Positions 35,287-61,204 of a stretch of DNA of 64,000 nucleotides are shown here, piece by piece (position 1 is the stretch's first letter; the number at the start of each line of letters is the position of its first letter). The notes beneath the pieces were generated by a model. It was not told the origin of the DNA. It saw only the letters and a list, made by a program, of their open reading frames with translations, and did not search any database. The position numbers and the translations under genes are program-made. This DNA comes from Sphyrna mokarran (taxonomy: Eukaryota), in NCBI GenBank assembly GCA_024679065.1, contig JAGIQG010000016.1, positions 5,332,001 to 5,396,000 of the forward strand. The letters are read 5' to 3'.

Positions 35287-35403
35287 TTAAGTTTCGCTGC
35301 ACTTCACAGAGGCGTACACAGTCTCCTCCACGTTTTCCCTTTTTGATGAAGCTTTCGCCAGTACATTCAGATCCAGCGTCGCATAAACCATCCCCTGTTC
35401 GAC
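35287..35403 (-). CDS. Gene B terminal exon: [38 protein letters not shown]
   Basis: Acceptor ctttttcaacag, phase 0. Two YxxL/V motifs 23 residues apart, then TAA. Confidence 0.88.
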   Translation of the reverse strand, partial: VEQGMVYATLDLNVLAKASSKRENVEETVYASVKCSET

Positions 35404-59400: not shown

Positions 59401-61204
59401 ACCCTTTGTAATTTCTTGCGGTCTTGGGCAGAGCAGGGGCCATACCAAACTGTGATACATCTGGAAAGAATACTTTTGATGGGGGAATAGGAGGGGAGGG
59501 GTGCTTCAGGACCGAGGGAAATATTCGGAGCGGAGTGGTTTCTGGAGGTGGATTTGAAATGTAGCAAGGCGTGTGAAAAACTGGGCTGGCTGGGTTTCTG
59601 AAACCATCGATAGATGTTGGGAGGACGTTGTGTAGCAATGGTATCAAACAATTTCAGAGTCCAGACTGAGACAGCTCCATGTTGGAAACTGAATCTAATT
59701 AGCAGTAATGGGATCTTTAGCCTGTGTCACCGGGAGGTGTGATCTGAGTCCTAGCCTACGGTTGAGATAAAAACTTTGGTGCCATGCAGTAGGAAAAGGG
59801 CAGATGATATGGGCAGCACAATGGCACAGAGGTTAGGACCACCGTCTCCCAGCACCAGGGACCCTGGTTCGATTCCTGGCTTGGGTCACTGTCTGTGCGG
59901 AGTCTGCACATTCTCCCCATGTCTGCATGTGTTTCTCCGATTTCCTCCCACAGTCCAAAAATGTACAGCTTAAATGGATTGGCCATCCCAAATTGCCCCT
60001 GAGTGTCCCAAGATGTGTATGTTAGAGGGATCAGCGGGGTAAATGTACAGAGTTCTGGCTCTCGGGATTGGGGTGGGATTGTTGTCGGTGCAGACACAAT
60101 AGGGCGAATGGCCTGCTTCTGCCCATAGGGATTCTATCACACATCAGACCAGGACACTAGGATGATCTACAGGCTAAAGGACTGTAATGAATCCAGAGTA
60201 ATGAATCTGAGGCAAGGCAGGGCTATGGAAACAAATGAATTAGGGATGGATTGAGTGTCACAGAGCTGCATTAGTTTGAAGAAGACAGGGGAAGACCTTT
60301 GACAGAGCGAGTGAAGCGATTTGGAAAGTAACATGGACTAAGTGCCGAGGAGTCTCCCAAAATTCTCCAGCTCTGCGGATTTCCCTCACCTCTCTGTTAG
60401 TTAGAGATTGCCAGAGATTTATTGCTCAGAACAGTCCACCACAGGGTTCCTGCTACAGGAACAAAATATGATGCAATCCATTTTAAAATAACCCTCTCAA
60501 CTCCCATTCCCAACTGCTCAGCAAGCACTTACCATTAATAACCTGAAAATAACAAGATGAGCCGGAATGTGAACCGGATTCAAACATTAGAACGACGCAG
60601 CAATATTCCGATGATGATTGCAGAGATAATTGCCGGAATTTTGCTGCCTTGCCCACCCTATTCTGGGGCAGGCCAGGCTGGCAGGGCAGCATTCCCTGTT
60701 GGCCTTGGGCGAGCGAAACCTCAGGCAGGCGAGGTCATAAAATATCGACCATTAGGTTTTCACCAGGACGCACAGTCCAATACATTGTCCCCGTTTCCCA
60801 CCCTCTTTTATTACACTTAAACCCCCCACACACAGCAACAACGCTCCTGGGAAAATACATACCTACAATTGTCAAATTCATTGTTTTTTCATGATTTCCC
60901 TCAGGGAATAAAGTGAGCTCACACTTATACATTCCCTCATCCTGCATCTGCAAAGACTTTAATAAAATGGATCCATCCAATTGGGAATTGTTCCTGAAAA
61001 CTGTCCGACTGGAATAATGTGGATTTGAATTGTTGATCCCAAACTTATGGTGATATATAATGAAGGAAATATTTTCAGCATCTTTCTTCCAGGCAATTTG
61101 TACCAATCTTGTGTTGTTCTTTCCTGTTGCCTGACATAGGAGTGTCACCTCCGCCCCAGCAAACGCAGTGAGGGTCAGACCTGTAACCTGGTTCCCGGCT
61201 GTAA
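35287..61204 (-). CDS. Gene B: nectin/PVR/CD96-like 3-Ig membrane receptor with ITIM-like + ITSM tail; leader exon not found
   Basis: Exons 60863-61204, 56468-56761, 50485-50587, 47239-47378, 44010-44114, 39748-39782 and 35287-35403 are all GT-AG and join in frame to TAA at 35287-35289. Junction phases are the same as in gene A. Confidence 0.9.
35680..37476 (-). repeat. Same minisatellite in inverted orientation (continues at 39545-39725)
   Basis: accggttagtgtaaacactgcacataacacac units that become more diverged towards 37476. Confidence 0.95.
37821..39544 (-). mobile_element. Young CR1, 5'-truncated and internally rearranged, inserted in a minisatellite
   Basis: RT motifs PQGSVLGP and KFADDTK, one stop at 39190 and frameshifts near 38220-38410. 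TGTATATA flanks both ends (37813-37820 and 39545-39552). Confidence 0.93.
39748..39782 (-). CDS. Gene B exon: 35-nt cytoplasmic microexon ([12 protein letters not shown])
   Basis: Acceptor acaaacag (NAGNAG: cag|CAG), donor GAG|gtatgt. It supplies the phase 1 to phase 0 bridge needed between the TM and terminal exons. Confidence 0.82.
39853..41540 (+). repeat. C-rich polypyrimidine minisatellite (~39-bp unit ccaacctcccctcccccactctcccctcctcctgcctcc)
   Basis: Almost G-free 1.7-kb tract, G-rich on the transcribed (minus) strand. Confidence 0.95.
42770..43800 (-). mobile_element. Degenerate CR1 3' part interrupted by a SINE
   Basis: [17 protein letters not shown] and FTQRVV motifs, with a SINE at 43402-43660. 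Confidence 0.8.
44010..44114 (-). CDS. Gene B exon: transmembrane segment
   Basis: [34 protein letters not shown]. Acceptor catttcaaag, donor G|gtaagt, 105 nt. Confidence 0.92.
47239..47378 (-). CDS. Gene B exon: second half of third Ig domain
   Basis: [46 protein letters not shown]. Acceptor tttttccaag, donor G|gtattt, 140 nt, phase 2/1. Confidence 0.88.
47685..48290 (+). mobile_element. Rex1/Babar-like LINE 3' relic
   Basis: [18 protein letters not shown]...[13 protein letters not shown]...ITAWYG, with the same 3' end as the 3930-4955 copy. Confidence 0.7.
50485..50587 (-). CDS. Gene B exon: first half of third Ig domain
   Basis: [34 protein letters not shown]. Acceptor ttttcccccgtag, donor GG|gtaaat, 103 nt. 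Not in the ORF track. Confidence 0.9.
51637..52806 (+). mobile_element. Young 5'-truncated CR1 (321-aa open RT C-terminal part)
   Basis: [24 protein letters not shown] and [10 protein letters not shown] motifs with a (TTCTATG)n tail. Nested in an older LINE relic. Confidence 0.95.
53105..53222. mobile_element. Short MITE-like element with imperfect ~28-bp terminal inverted repeats, inside an HE1 SINE
   Basis: Left end gggattttaccagcacgtctgcccga resembles the reverse complement of the right end, agaattttactggcatgccagccccga. Confidence 0.4.
53720..55350 (-). mobile_element. Degenerate CR1 LINE, ~1.6 kb
   Basis: [16 protein letters not shown] and [14 protein letters not shown] in broken frames. 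Confidence 0.9.
55355..55790 (+). mobile_element. CR1 3' fragment
   Basis: [15 protein letters not shown]...[11 protein letters not shown]...[10 protein letters not shown]. Confidence 0.85.
56468..56761 (-). CDS. Gene B exon: second Ig domain
   Basis: VKPNNT...[17 protein letters not shown]...[12 protein letters not shown]. Acceptor ctcccccaag, donor T|gtaagt, 294 nt. Confidence 0.95.
60863..61204 (-). CDS. Gene B exon: Ig V-set domain
   Basis: VTLLCQ...LVQIAWKK...[27 protein letters not shown]. Acceptor tttgtgcag, donor G|gtatgt, 342 nt. Confidence 0.95.

Follow-up and report, generated by a model that had tools for sequence, protein, structure and literature searches.

The DNA analysed here, a stretch of 64,000 nt from the shark Sphyrna mokarran (contig JAGIQG010000016.1 of assembly GCA_024679065.1, positions 5,332,001 to 5,396,000; the window in what follows), carries on its minus strand, from 61204 to 35203, a gene in which a nectin-like ectodomain is joined to a tail with two motifs of the immunoreceptor tyrosine-based kind, one like the inhibitory motif (ITIM) and the other a switch motif (ITSM). 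Direct reading of this gene, gene A, gives seven visible coding exons, all open, in the order V, C, third immunoglobulin (Ig) domain in two pieces, transmembrane (TM) segment and two cytoplasmic exons. The junctions are all AG/GT with matching phases (1-1 for the Ig domains and the TM exon, 1-0 and then 0 for the tail). The layout of the locus in the direction of transcription is as follows:

61351..61833, no strand: run of N (assembly gap or mask), beginning 146 nt upstream of the V exon
60863..61204, minus strand: IgV exon, 342 nt, phase 1-1
56468..56761, minus strand: second Ig (C) exon, 294 nt, phase 1-1
50485..50587, minus strand: third Ig domain, first half (D3a), 103 nt, phase 1-2
47239..47378, minus strand: third Ig domain, second half (D3b), 140 nt, phase 2-1, acceptor ttttccaag/
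44010..44114, minus strand: TM exon, 105 nt, phase 1-1, last residues ...RKRKIQ and one further base
39748..39782, minus strand: first cytoplasmic exon, 35 nt, phase 1-0
35287..35403, minus strand: last coding exon with MVYATL and TVYASV, stop codon TAA at 35289-35287
35203..35286, minus strand: 3' untranslated region, AATAAA at 35229-35224, end of a transcript-like contig at 35203

Searched exon by exon (Pfam, PDB, tblastn, HMMER) and not as one joined protein, gene A displays the architecture of the nectin family, i.e. one V-set domain, two C2-type Ig domains and a single TM span. The V exon matches Pfam V-set (1.8e-14), the C exon C2-set_2 (2.1e-20) and D3a the N-terminal half of Ig_3 (4.6e-4), and the top PDB matches of the exons are nectins and PVR only. 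The nectin-type V-C2-C2 ectodomain proposed in an initial annotation, which had been made from the letters alone, is borne out by these matches. For the V exon the best PDB match is nectin-1 D1 (3.4e-16, 63 bits), followed by nectin-4, nectin-3, CD96 (36 bits), PVR, CD226 (31.5 bits) and nectin-2, human PVR (33 bits) and human nectin-2 (31 bits) being about equal. The second domain is matched best by PVR D2 (3.9e-16, 62 bits) and nectin-2 (7e-15, 58 bits), then by nectin-1, and D3a matches the B-C strands of nectin-3 D3 and nectin-1 D3; across all domains, no one human nectin is closest in PDB. The V domains of nectins and PVR carry the signature (V/I)(S/T)Q, AX6G, T(F/Y)P. HMMER pairs '..vqiaw..' and '..lfpegn' of gene A with '..tqvtw..' and '..tfptgn' of nectin-1 D1, i.e. 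gene A has V and L where the signature has S/T and T, while Q51, W54, F115, P116 and G118 are invariant in an alignment of 9 sequences of nectins and of the family described below. The V domains of CD96, CD226 and TIGIT belong to the same wider PVR/nectin V-set group, but their scores are far below those of the nectins and their architectures are unlike that of gene A, with one Ig domain in TIGIT, two in CD226 and V-V-C plus a stalk in CD96. In the TM exon of gene A, the hydrophobic span is free of charged residues, and a basic stop-transfer segment comes after it.

All exons cited in the initial annotation could be confirmed at their coordinates by direct reading, but its single long third-domain exon starting at 47484 gives way to two exons. 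Read as one exon (47484..47239), the domain has no Trp, no Pfam match and no PDB nectin match, and PDB returned only titin F-G strand matches; this reading was rejected. Family proteins align to both third-domain pieces, the alignments to D3b beginning only at 47377. D3a was recovered by tblastn with the corresponding exon of gene B (75% over 20 aa, E 7.8e-8), a second family gene which had been overlooked and which lies in tandem on the same strand, 22 kb downstream of gene A. The two-exon third domain is common to gene A and this neighbouring paralogue.

At the 5' end, the V exon has the acceptor tgtgcag/ and the donor G/gtatg, with a T-rich tract and a CTAAC branch-point-like site (61235-61231) upstream. 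A leader contiguous with the V exon, as tblastn alignments extending into 61250-61205 might suggest, was rejected in view of the T-rich tract, the CTAAC site and the cag acceptor, and also because the Mustelus protein P0191 joins its leader directly to the C domain at the same codon and because gene B alignments likewise overrun upstream of its own acceptor. A pattern scan of 61205-64000 for a separate leader exon yielded two candidates, neither of which resembles family leaders. The leader exon may sit inside or beyond the N run at 61351-61833.

Transcript evidence comes from a public sequencing run, X1, of 98 million letters stored as contigs, whose RNA nature is only guessed by the tool ('RNA?'). 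It contains 94% of the sampled words from the last exon of gene A and is the sole run found with this exon. Comparison of X1 with window positions 35150-39850 revealed a contig of 1046 nt that matches 35203-35401 on the minus strand with 0 mismatches and 0 gaps, then skips 4344 nt and joins 39748 to 35403, the cut in the contig being placed two positions to the right. The skipped segment is bounded by CT..AC on the plus strand, i.e. GT..AG on the strand of the gene, so that the splice from 39748 to 35403 that had been predicted from the letters is present in this contig. The contig terminates 21 nt past AATAAA, and the intron bins 35464-36091 have zero depth in X1. The remaining two runs of that study, which come from different organisms, gave nothing at the gene A exons. 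Because a spliced contig terminated at a poly(A) site occurs in a run of that size, X1 is best read as RNA and gene A as an expressed gene.

The last exon encodes an ITIM-like MVYATL followed by the ITSM TVYASV, which fits TxYxx(V/I), with the two tyrosines 23 residues apart. The protein ends in ...CSET; the afadin-binding motif E/A-x-Y-V, the PDZ-binding end of classical nectins that is present in the retrieved nectin-2 and nectin-3 sequences, is absent. The initial annotation had described the tail in the same terms (an ITIM-like motif and a canonical ITSM, 23 residues apart, without the afadin motif), and reading of the exon agrees. It had compared the spacing with that of Y663 and Y686 in PECAM-1, also 23 apart, and had named conservation of the tyrosines in other sharks as a test in advance; the tandem tail proves to be conserved across sharks. 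Both tyrosines are present in 13 out of 13 tails of the same type (type I, see below), comprising gene A and 12 sequences from 11 other species, and the motifs can be aligned in all of them. In the first motif, the residue at pY+1 (relative to the phosphorylatable tyrosine) is Ala and that at pY+3 Leu in all 13, whereas pY-2 varies (nine tails have I, two have T and two have M, the last being the window and Mustelus only). The second motif has T at -2 in 13/13 and V or I at +3 in 12/13, with the exception falling at the junction of a Mustelus read-through model. The distance between the tyrosines is 23 in 8/13 and 22, 24 or 26 in the remainder, and the family consensus can be written as (I/T/M)-V-Y-A-x-L for the ITIM and T-(V/L)-Y-A-x-(V/I) for the ITSM. 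The occurrence of both motifs in 13 of 13 alignable tails is more than chance. With tblastn, 12 family tails match the last exon of gene A, the best being that of Cetorhinus (67.5%, E 3e-10). MVYATL, including its M at pY-2, is shared by the Mustelus orthologue, a point missed earlier.

The relatives were collected by running HMMER with the V exon against 1.84 billion representatives, by name look-ups and by two further searches. They were seen in 15 elasmobranch species, of which 12 are sharks (Mustelus, Carcharodon, Cetorhinus, Heterodontus, Stegostoma, Chiloscyllium, Hemiscyllium, two Scyliorhinus species, Pristiophorus, Heptranchias and Rhincodon) and three are batoids (Leucoraja, Amblyraja and Narcine). 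The family is multi-copy and was present in all the shark and ray genomes that came up. With the Heterodontus protein P0020 as query, 22 of 24 matches were elasmobranch 'nectin-like' predictions. No chimaera or bony-fish member turned up in these searches, which were word-limited, and absence from these groups is thus not proven. In the databases the proteins appear as 'nectin-1-like', 'nectin-3-like' or 'tactile-like' predictions. The V-C2-C2-TM arrangement of gene A recurs in Mustelus asterias LOC144508731 (P0197), Heterodontus francisci XP_067874875 (P0020), Cetorhinus maximus P0176 and Scyliorhinus canicula P0178, and the ITIM and ITSM tails of predicted elasmobranch 'nectin-1-like' proteins align with that of gene A residue by residue. 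Gene A differs from these predicted relatives in being only 60-83% identical per exon to the nearest of them, and most have I at pY-2.

Three types of tail are found on this scaffold. Type I, to which gene A belongs, has an ITIM and then an ITSM; in type II, Y-(V/I)-N and a middle tyrosine precede an S-x-Y-x-x-L ITIM; type III, the type of the relatives of gene B, can be aligned with type I. The type II arrangement of Y-(V/I)-N plus ITIM recalls the immunoglobulin tail tyrosine (ITT)-like motif plus ITIM of TIGIT and the YVN of CD226. Type I and type II proteins of the same species were compared in five pairs (P0154/P0156, P0176/P0179, P0175/P0180, P0188/P0183 and P0189/P0184), and in each of the five the ectodomains are 86-94% identical, compared to 19-43% for the TM segments and 24-34% for the tails. 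In the trees, types I and II pair by species or lineage and not by tail type. This pattern would fit gene conversion or recent duplication with tail exchange, and the pairs look like paired immune receptor families, though neither TM segment has a charged residue. No type II tail exons were found in the window by tblastn.

Maximum-likelihood trees were calculated for the V exon (61 rows), the C exon (53 rows) and the whole ectodomain (47 rows, 302 columns, database proteins only). They are unrooted and do not include PVR, nectin-4, CD96, CD226, TIGIT, CRTAM, CADM or mammalian nectin-2, the last not being among the best 120 of 210 matches. In all three trees, nectin-1, nectin-3 and the Polypterus 'nectin-1-like' proteins stand apart from nectin-2 plus the family (96/88* for V, 96/85* for C and 100/99* for the ectodomain), the nectin-2 sequences in that group coming from all jawed vertebrates sampled. 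A 99/96* branch of the ectodomain tree has the family on one side, and at 94/85 all 17 nectin-2 sequences are set apart from the family. The nectin-2 sequences of elasmobranchs form a clade of their own (100/99*, 99/98* and 100/100* in the V, C and ectodomain trees), and both window genes (winA and winB) lie outside it, in the family group, where winA_V groups with the Mustelus proteins P0197 (N-terminal half) and P0185 at 100/95* and winA_C with Mustelus members at 100/99*. Nectin-2 (PVRL2, CD112; 'PVR cell adhesion molecule related 2 like' in fishes) likewise has three Ig domains and is the nearest lineage in the trees, but it differs in its long tail, which ends in the PDZ motif (A/G/P)(V/M)(Y/F)V and has no ITIM/ITSM in 13/13 elasmobranch sequences; these tails come in two alternative forms, as in tetrapods. 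The sharks thus possess a normal nectin-2, the family is extra, and on the trees it stands beside the nectin-2 lineage, not nectin-1.

That gene A is no more than the orthologue, in sharks, of nectin-1 (the reading implied by automatic naming) or of nectin-2 is very hard to believe given these trees. The 'nectin-1-like' names of its relatives and the nectin-1 D1 match of its V domain speak for such orthology, but nectin-1 and nectin-3 lie across the splits named above, elasmobranchs possess a separate nectin-2 clade whose tails keep the PDZ end, and the tail of gene A lacks it. The trees and the family membership likewise speak against a 1:1 orthologue of any characterised receptor, an outcome that would have told against the initial annotation. 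The option of a lineage-specific family that it had raised is supported by the database searches and the trees, and gene A belongs to a multigene family that appears to be lineage-restricted. The other option it had raised, a link between nectins and CD96, TIGIT or PVR, finds no support in the V-domain scores of CD96 and CD226 (31-36 bits, vs 63 for nectin-1) or in the trees, whose sequences do not include these receptors and which put the family next to nectin-2.

The relation of this family to nectin-2 may go further. The two have close accessions in Rhincodon (XP_048476499 for the family member and XP_048476492 for the nectin-2 orthologue), and in Heptranchias and Carcharodon family members and the nectin-2 orthologue are on the same contigs; for linkage in these three genera this is a hint only. 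The ectodomain tree would allow an early origin of the family, its root being unplaced. It is conceivable, if rather doubtful, that the family is a nectin-2 paralogue older than the split of cartilaginous and bony fishes, with paired immune receptors (ITIM-ITSM in the style of PD-1/BTLA, and Y-x-N plus ITIM) whose ectodomains were homogenised by gene conversion, and that it represents the elasmobranch equivalent of the PVR-TIGIT-CD226-CD96 axis, whose tail motifs may even derive from it.

Identities to the Mustelus read-through model P0197, with gene A compared to its N-terminal half and gene B to its C-terminal half, are:

V exon: gene A 79%, gene B 82%
C exon: gene A 72%, gene B 86%
D3a: gene A 64%, gene B 90%
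D3b: gene A 60%, gene B 86%
TM exon: gene A 74%, gene B 84%
Tail: gene A 83%, gene B tail not found in the window

For D3b of gene A, identity is 60-67% with Mustelus P0197 and P0191. Within gene A, conservation is highest in the tail exon, and the ectodomain evolves faster than that of gene B. These figures bear on the idea that gene A is a decaying or non-functional copy in a cluster of fast turnover, transcribed without giving a membrane protein. Its ectodomain (60-79% identity to the Mustelus orthologue, vs 82-90% for gene B), the M in place of the canonical I/V/L/S at pY-2, the invisible leader exon and ATG, and the close Mustelus model P0185, whose N-terminus has no hydrophobic core, might be taken in this sense. 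We consider decay improbable, however, as all seven visible exons have open frames and undamaged splice sites, the spliced X1 contig ends at a polyadenylation site and the tail is conserved at 83%; moreover, the N gap suffices to hide a leader, and Mustelus P0197 begins with a normal signal peptide.

Gene A is thus probably an expressed member of a nectin-2-related family of three-Ig type I membrane proteins of sharks, skates and rays, in which an ITIM/ITSM tail replaces the afadin-binding end and would, when phosphorylated, dock an SHP phosphatase. In such a receptor, the V domain, like those of nectins, would bind a partner present on a second cell, Src-family kinases would phosphorylate both tail tyrosines, and the tyrosine pair would dock the tandem SH2 domains of SHP-1, SHP-2 or SHP-2L, with the N-SH2 domain on MVpYATL and the C-SH2 domain on TVpYASV. 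The phosphatase so activated would then dampen signalling in the receptor-bearing cell, putatively a leukocyte. The motifs are compatible with these steps. The preference given for the SHP-2 N-SH2 domain is (I/L/V/m)x-pY-(T/V/A)x(I/V/L/f), with Met at -2 included, and that for the C-SH2 domain starts with T/V/I and has A at +1 (PMC12151841). MVYATL fits the former, Met being a less frequently selected residue (PMC12151841), and TVYASV fits the latter. Sharks are described in the same study as having SHP-1, SHP-2 and a third gene, SHP-2L, with conserved binding residues (PMC12151841).

Comparison with the inhibitory receptors PD-1 and BTLA points in the same direction. Their ITIM and ITSM tyrosines are given as 25 residues apart, a spacing taken by the authors to let both SH2 domains of SHP1/SHP2 bind together, and a medium-sized non-polar residue at pY+1, such as Ala, as a feature that defines SHP1 docking sites (PMC8631942). 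The family shares with them the tandem order of ITIM and then ITSM and a similar spacing (22-26, and 23 in gene A, vs 25). The Ala at pY+1 in family tails is as in SHP1-recruiting receptors, and the ITIM given for BTLA, IVYASL (PMC8631942), is the exact motif of 4/13 type I tails. One Heterodontus member also has a Y-x-N upstream. Such a motif is found upstream in BTLA too. PD-1 and BTLA differ from gene A in their ectodomain, which is one IgV or I-set domain of CD28-family type, with no sequence relation beyond the short motifs, and the likeness would be a resemblance in possible working, not membership.

Several points weigh against this reading of gene A. The transcript support is one contig from one run whose RNA status is guessed. 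Neither a leader exon nor a start codon was seen in 61205-64000, and an intact open reading frame (ORF) is thus unproven. The M at pY-2 of gene A lies outside the textbook ITIM (S/I/V/L)xYxx(I/V/L). One or both tyrosines are lost in 5/6 type III tails, only 1/6 keeping both, so part of the family can do without the motifs. Finally, the ITIM-bearing PVR, also related to nectin-2, works chiefly in adhesion and as a ligand.

The last point leads to a different reading, in which gene A encodes a PVR/CD155-like adhesion protein or ligand on epithelial, endothelial or many cell types, with an ITIM that tunes adhesion and motility via SHP-2 and with immune cells recognising it as a ligand, and not a leukocyte checkpoint receptor. 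PVR (CD155, Necl-5) is said to stand near nectin-2, where the family also stands, and is a known nectin relative that has an ITIM in place of the PDZ and band 4.1 motifs (PMC7286890). The end swap in gene A is alike, its second domain has PVR D2 as best PDB match, and its TM segment is free of charged residues, but its V domain scores only 33 bits against PVR. PVR is moreover described with one ITIM and without an ITIM-ITSM pair at PD-1/BTLA-like spacing (PMC7286890). Multi-copy genes, near-identical ectodomains with alternative tails and a fast-evolving ectodomain also argue against a plain adhesion protein; near-identical ectodomains with alternative tails and fast ectodomain evolution are typical of immune receptor families. 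We therefore hold a PVR-like role to be possible but unlikely, and favour the SHP-docking receptor. In the cited account, PVR is reported from placental mammals only, sharks are credited with nectin-1, nectin-3 and two necls, and the only 'equidistant' extra nectins mentioned are those of coelacanth, frogs and snakes (PMC7286890). With PVR confined to placental mammals, any likeness between its tail and that of the family would therefore be parallel evolution.

Nectins are textbook adhesion molecules. PVR, given as the only known member of the nectin group with an inhibitory motif, is taken to have arisen late, in mammals (PMC7286890). In the present case an entire family of sharks, skates and rays has made a PVR-like end swap, with a two-motif tail in the style of PD-1 and BTLA, and this combination of a nectin scaffold with such a tail, as a multigene family, is what appears to be new. 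Full-text literature searches, in which subscription journals were not covered, brought up no description of a nectin-like ITIM/ITSM family of sharks or rays. The proteins are already in public annotation under misleading names, 'nectin-1-like' in shark genomes among them, and the description of the family is new as far as found. If the tail recruits SHP, the ITIM-ITSM module would already have been present on very different ectodomains early in jawed-vertebrate history, and the family would be a candidate shark inhibitory receptor system missing from current lists of shark immune genes. The pairs of type I and type II proteins would then be a natural experiment on the evolution of alternative tails attached to one common ligand-binding domain.

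The neighbouring gene B is a type III relative with the same exon plan as gene A and V and C exons of equal length (342 and 294 nt). The exons found are:

12913..13254, minus strand: IgV exon, 342 nt, Pfam V-set 2.2e-15, PDB nectin-1 D1 5.3e-18
10810..11103, minus strand: second Ig exon, 294 nt, Pfam C2-set_2 2.3e-17
9149..9266, minus strand: D3a, 90% identical to Mustelus P0197
7498..7667, minus strand: D3b, Pfam I-set C-terminal half, 2.5e-4
5039..5152, minus strand: TM exon, 84% identical to Mustelus P0197

Over these exons, gene B is more conserved with respect to Mustelus (82-90%) than gene A is over its own (60-83%). No cytoplasmic exons of gene B were found in 1-5038, nor a tail match elsewhere in the window. 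The two halves of P0197 match gene A and then gene B in order, and the tandem pair is therefore common to both species.

The locus is rich in repeats. Arrays of a 34-nt minisatellite at 34017-34864 (24.8 copies) and 35685-37464 (about 54 copies) flank the ITIM/ITSM exon in opposite orientations, and short X1 contigs map to the second array (36226-36321 and 36774-36864). Between the TM exon and the first cytoplasmic exon, the intron holds a 1.6-kb array (39853-41485) that is C/T-rich on the plus strand, with periods of 39 nt and longer, a GC content of 64% and a strong GC skew. Reverse-transcriptase fragments of a long interspersed nuclear element (LINE) occupy parts of two introns, 38398-39183 on the minus strand and 51637-52602 on the plus strand (RVT_1, 3e-31 and 4e-24), and copies of these fragments are very abundant in X1 (up to about 239,000 in summed contig depth). 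Within the V-C intron of gene A, 60577-60639 on the plus strand, i.e. the strand opposite to the gene, matches residues 4-24 of Mustelus P0185 (71%, E 3e-7), within the N-terminus that has no hydrophobic core; this odd N-terminus may be repeat-derived or a mispredicted first exon in Mustelus. Finally, dozens of ORFs on both strands share one peptide theme (e.g. 895-1254, 7614-7952 and 62599-62888) and are, judging by this theme, evidently copies of one repeat resembling a short interspersed nuclear element (SINE) across the window.

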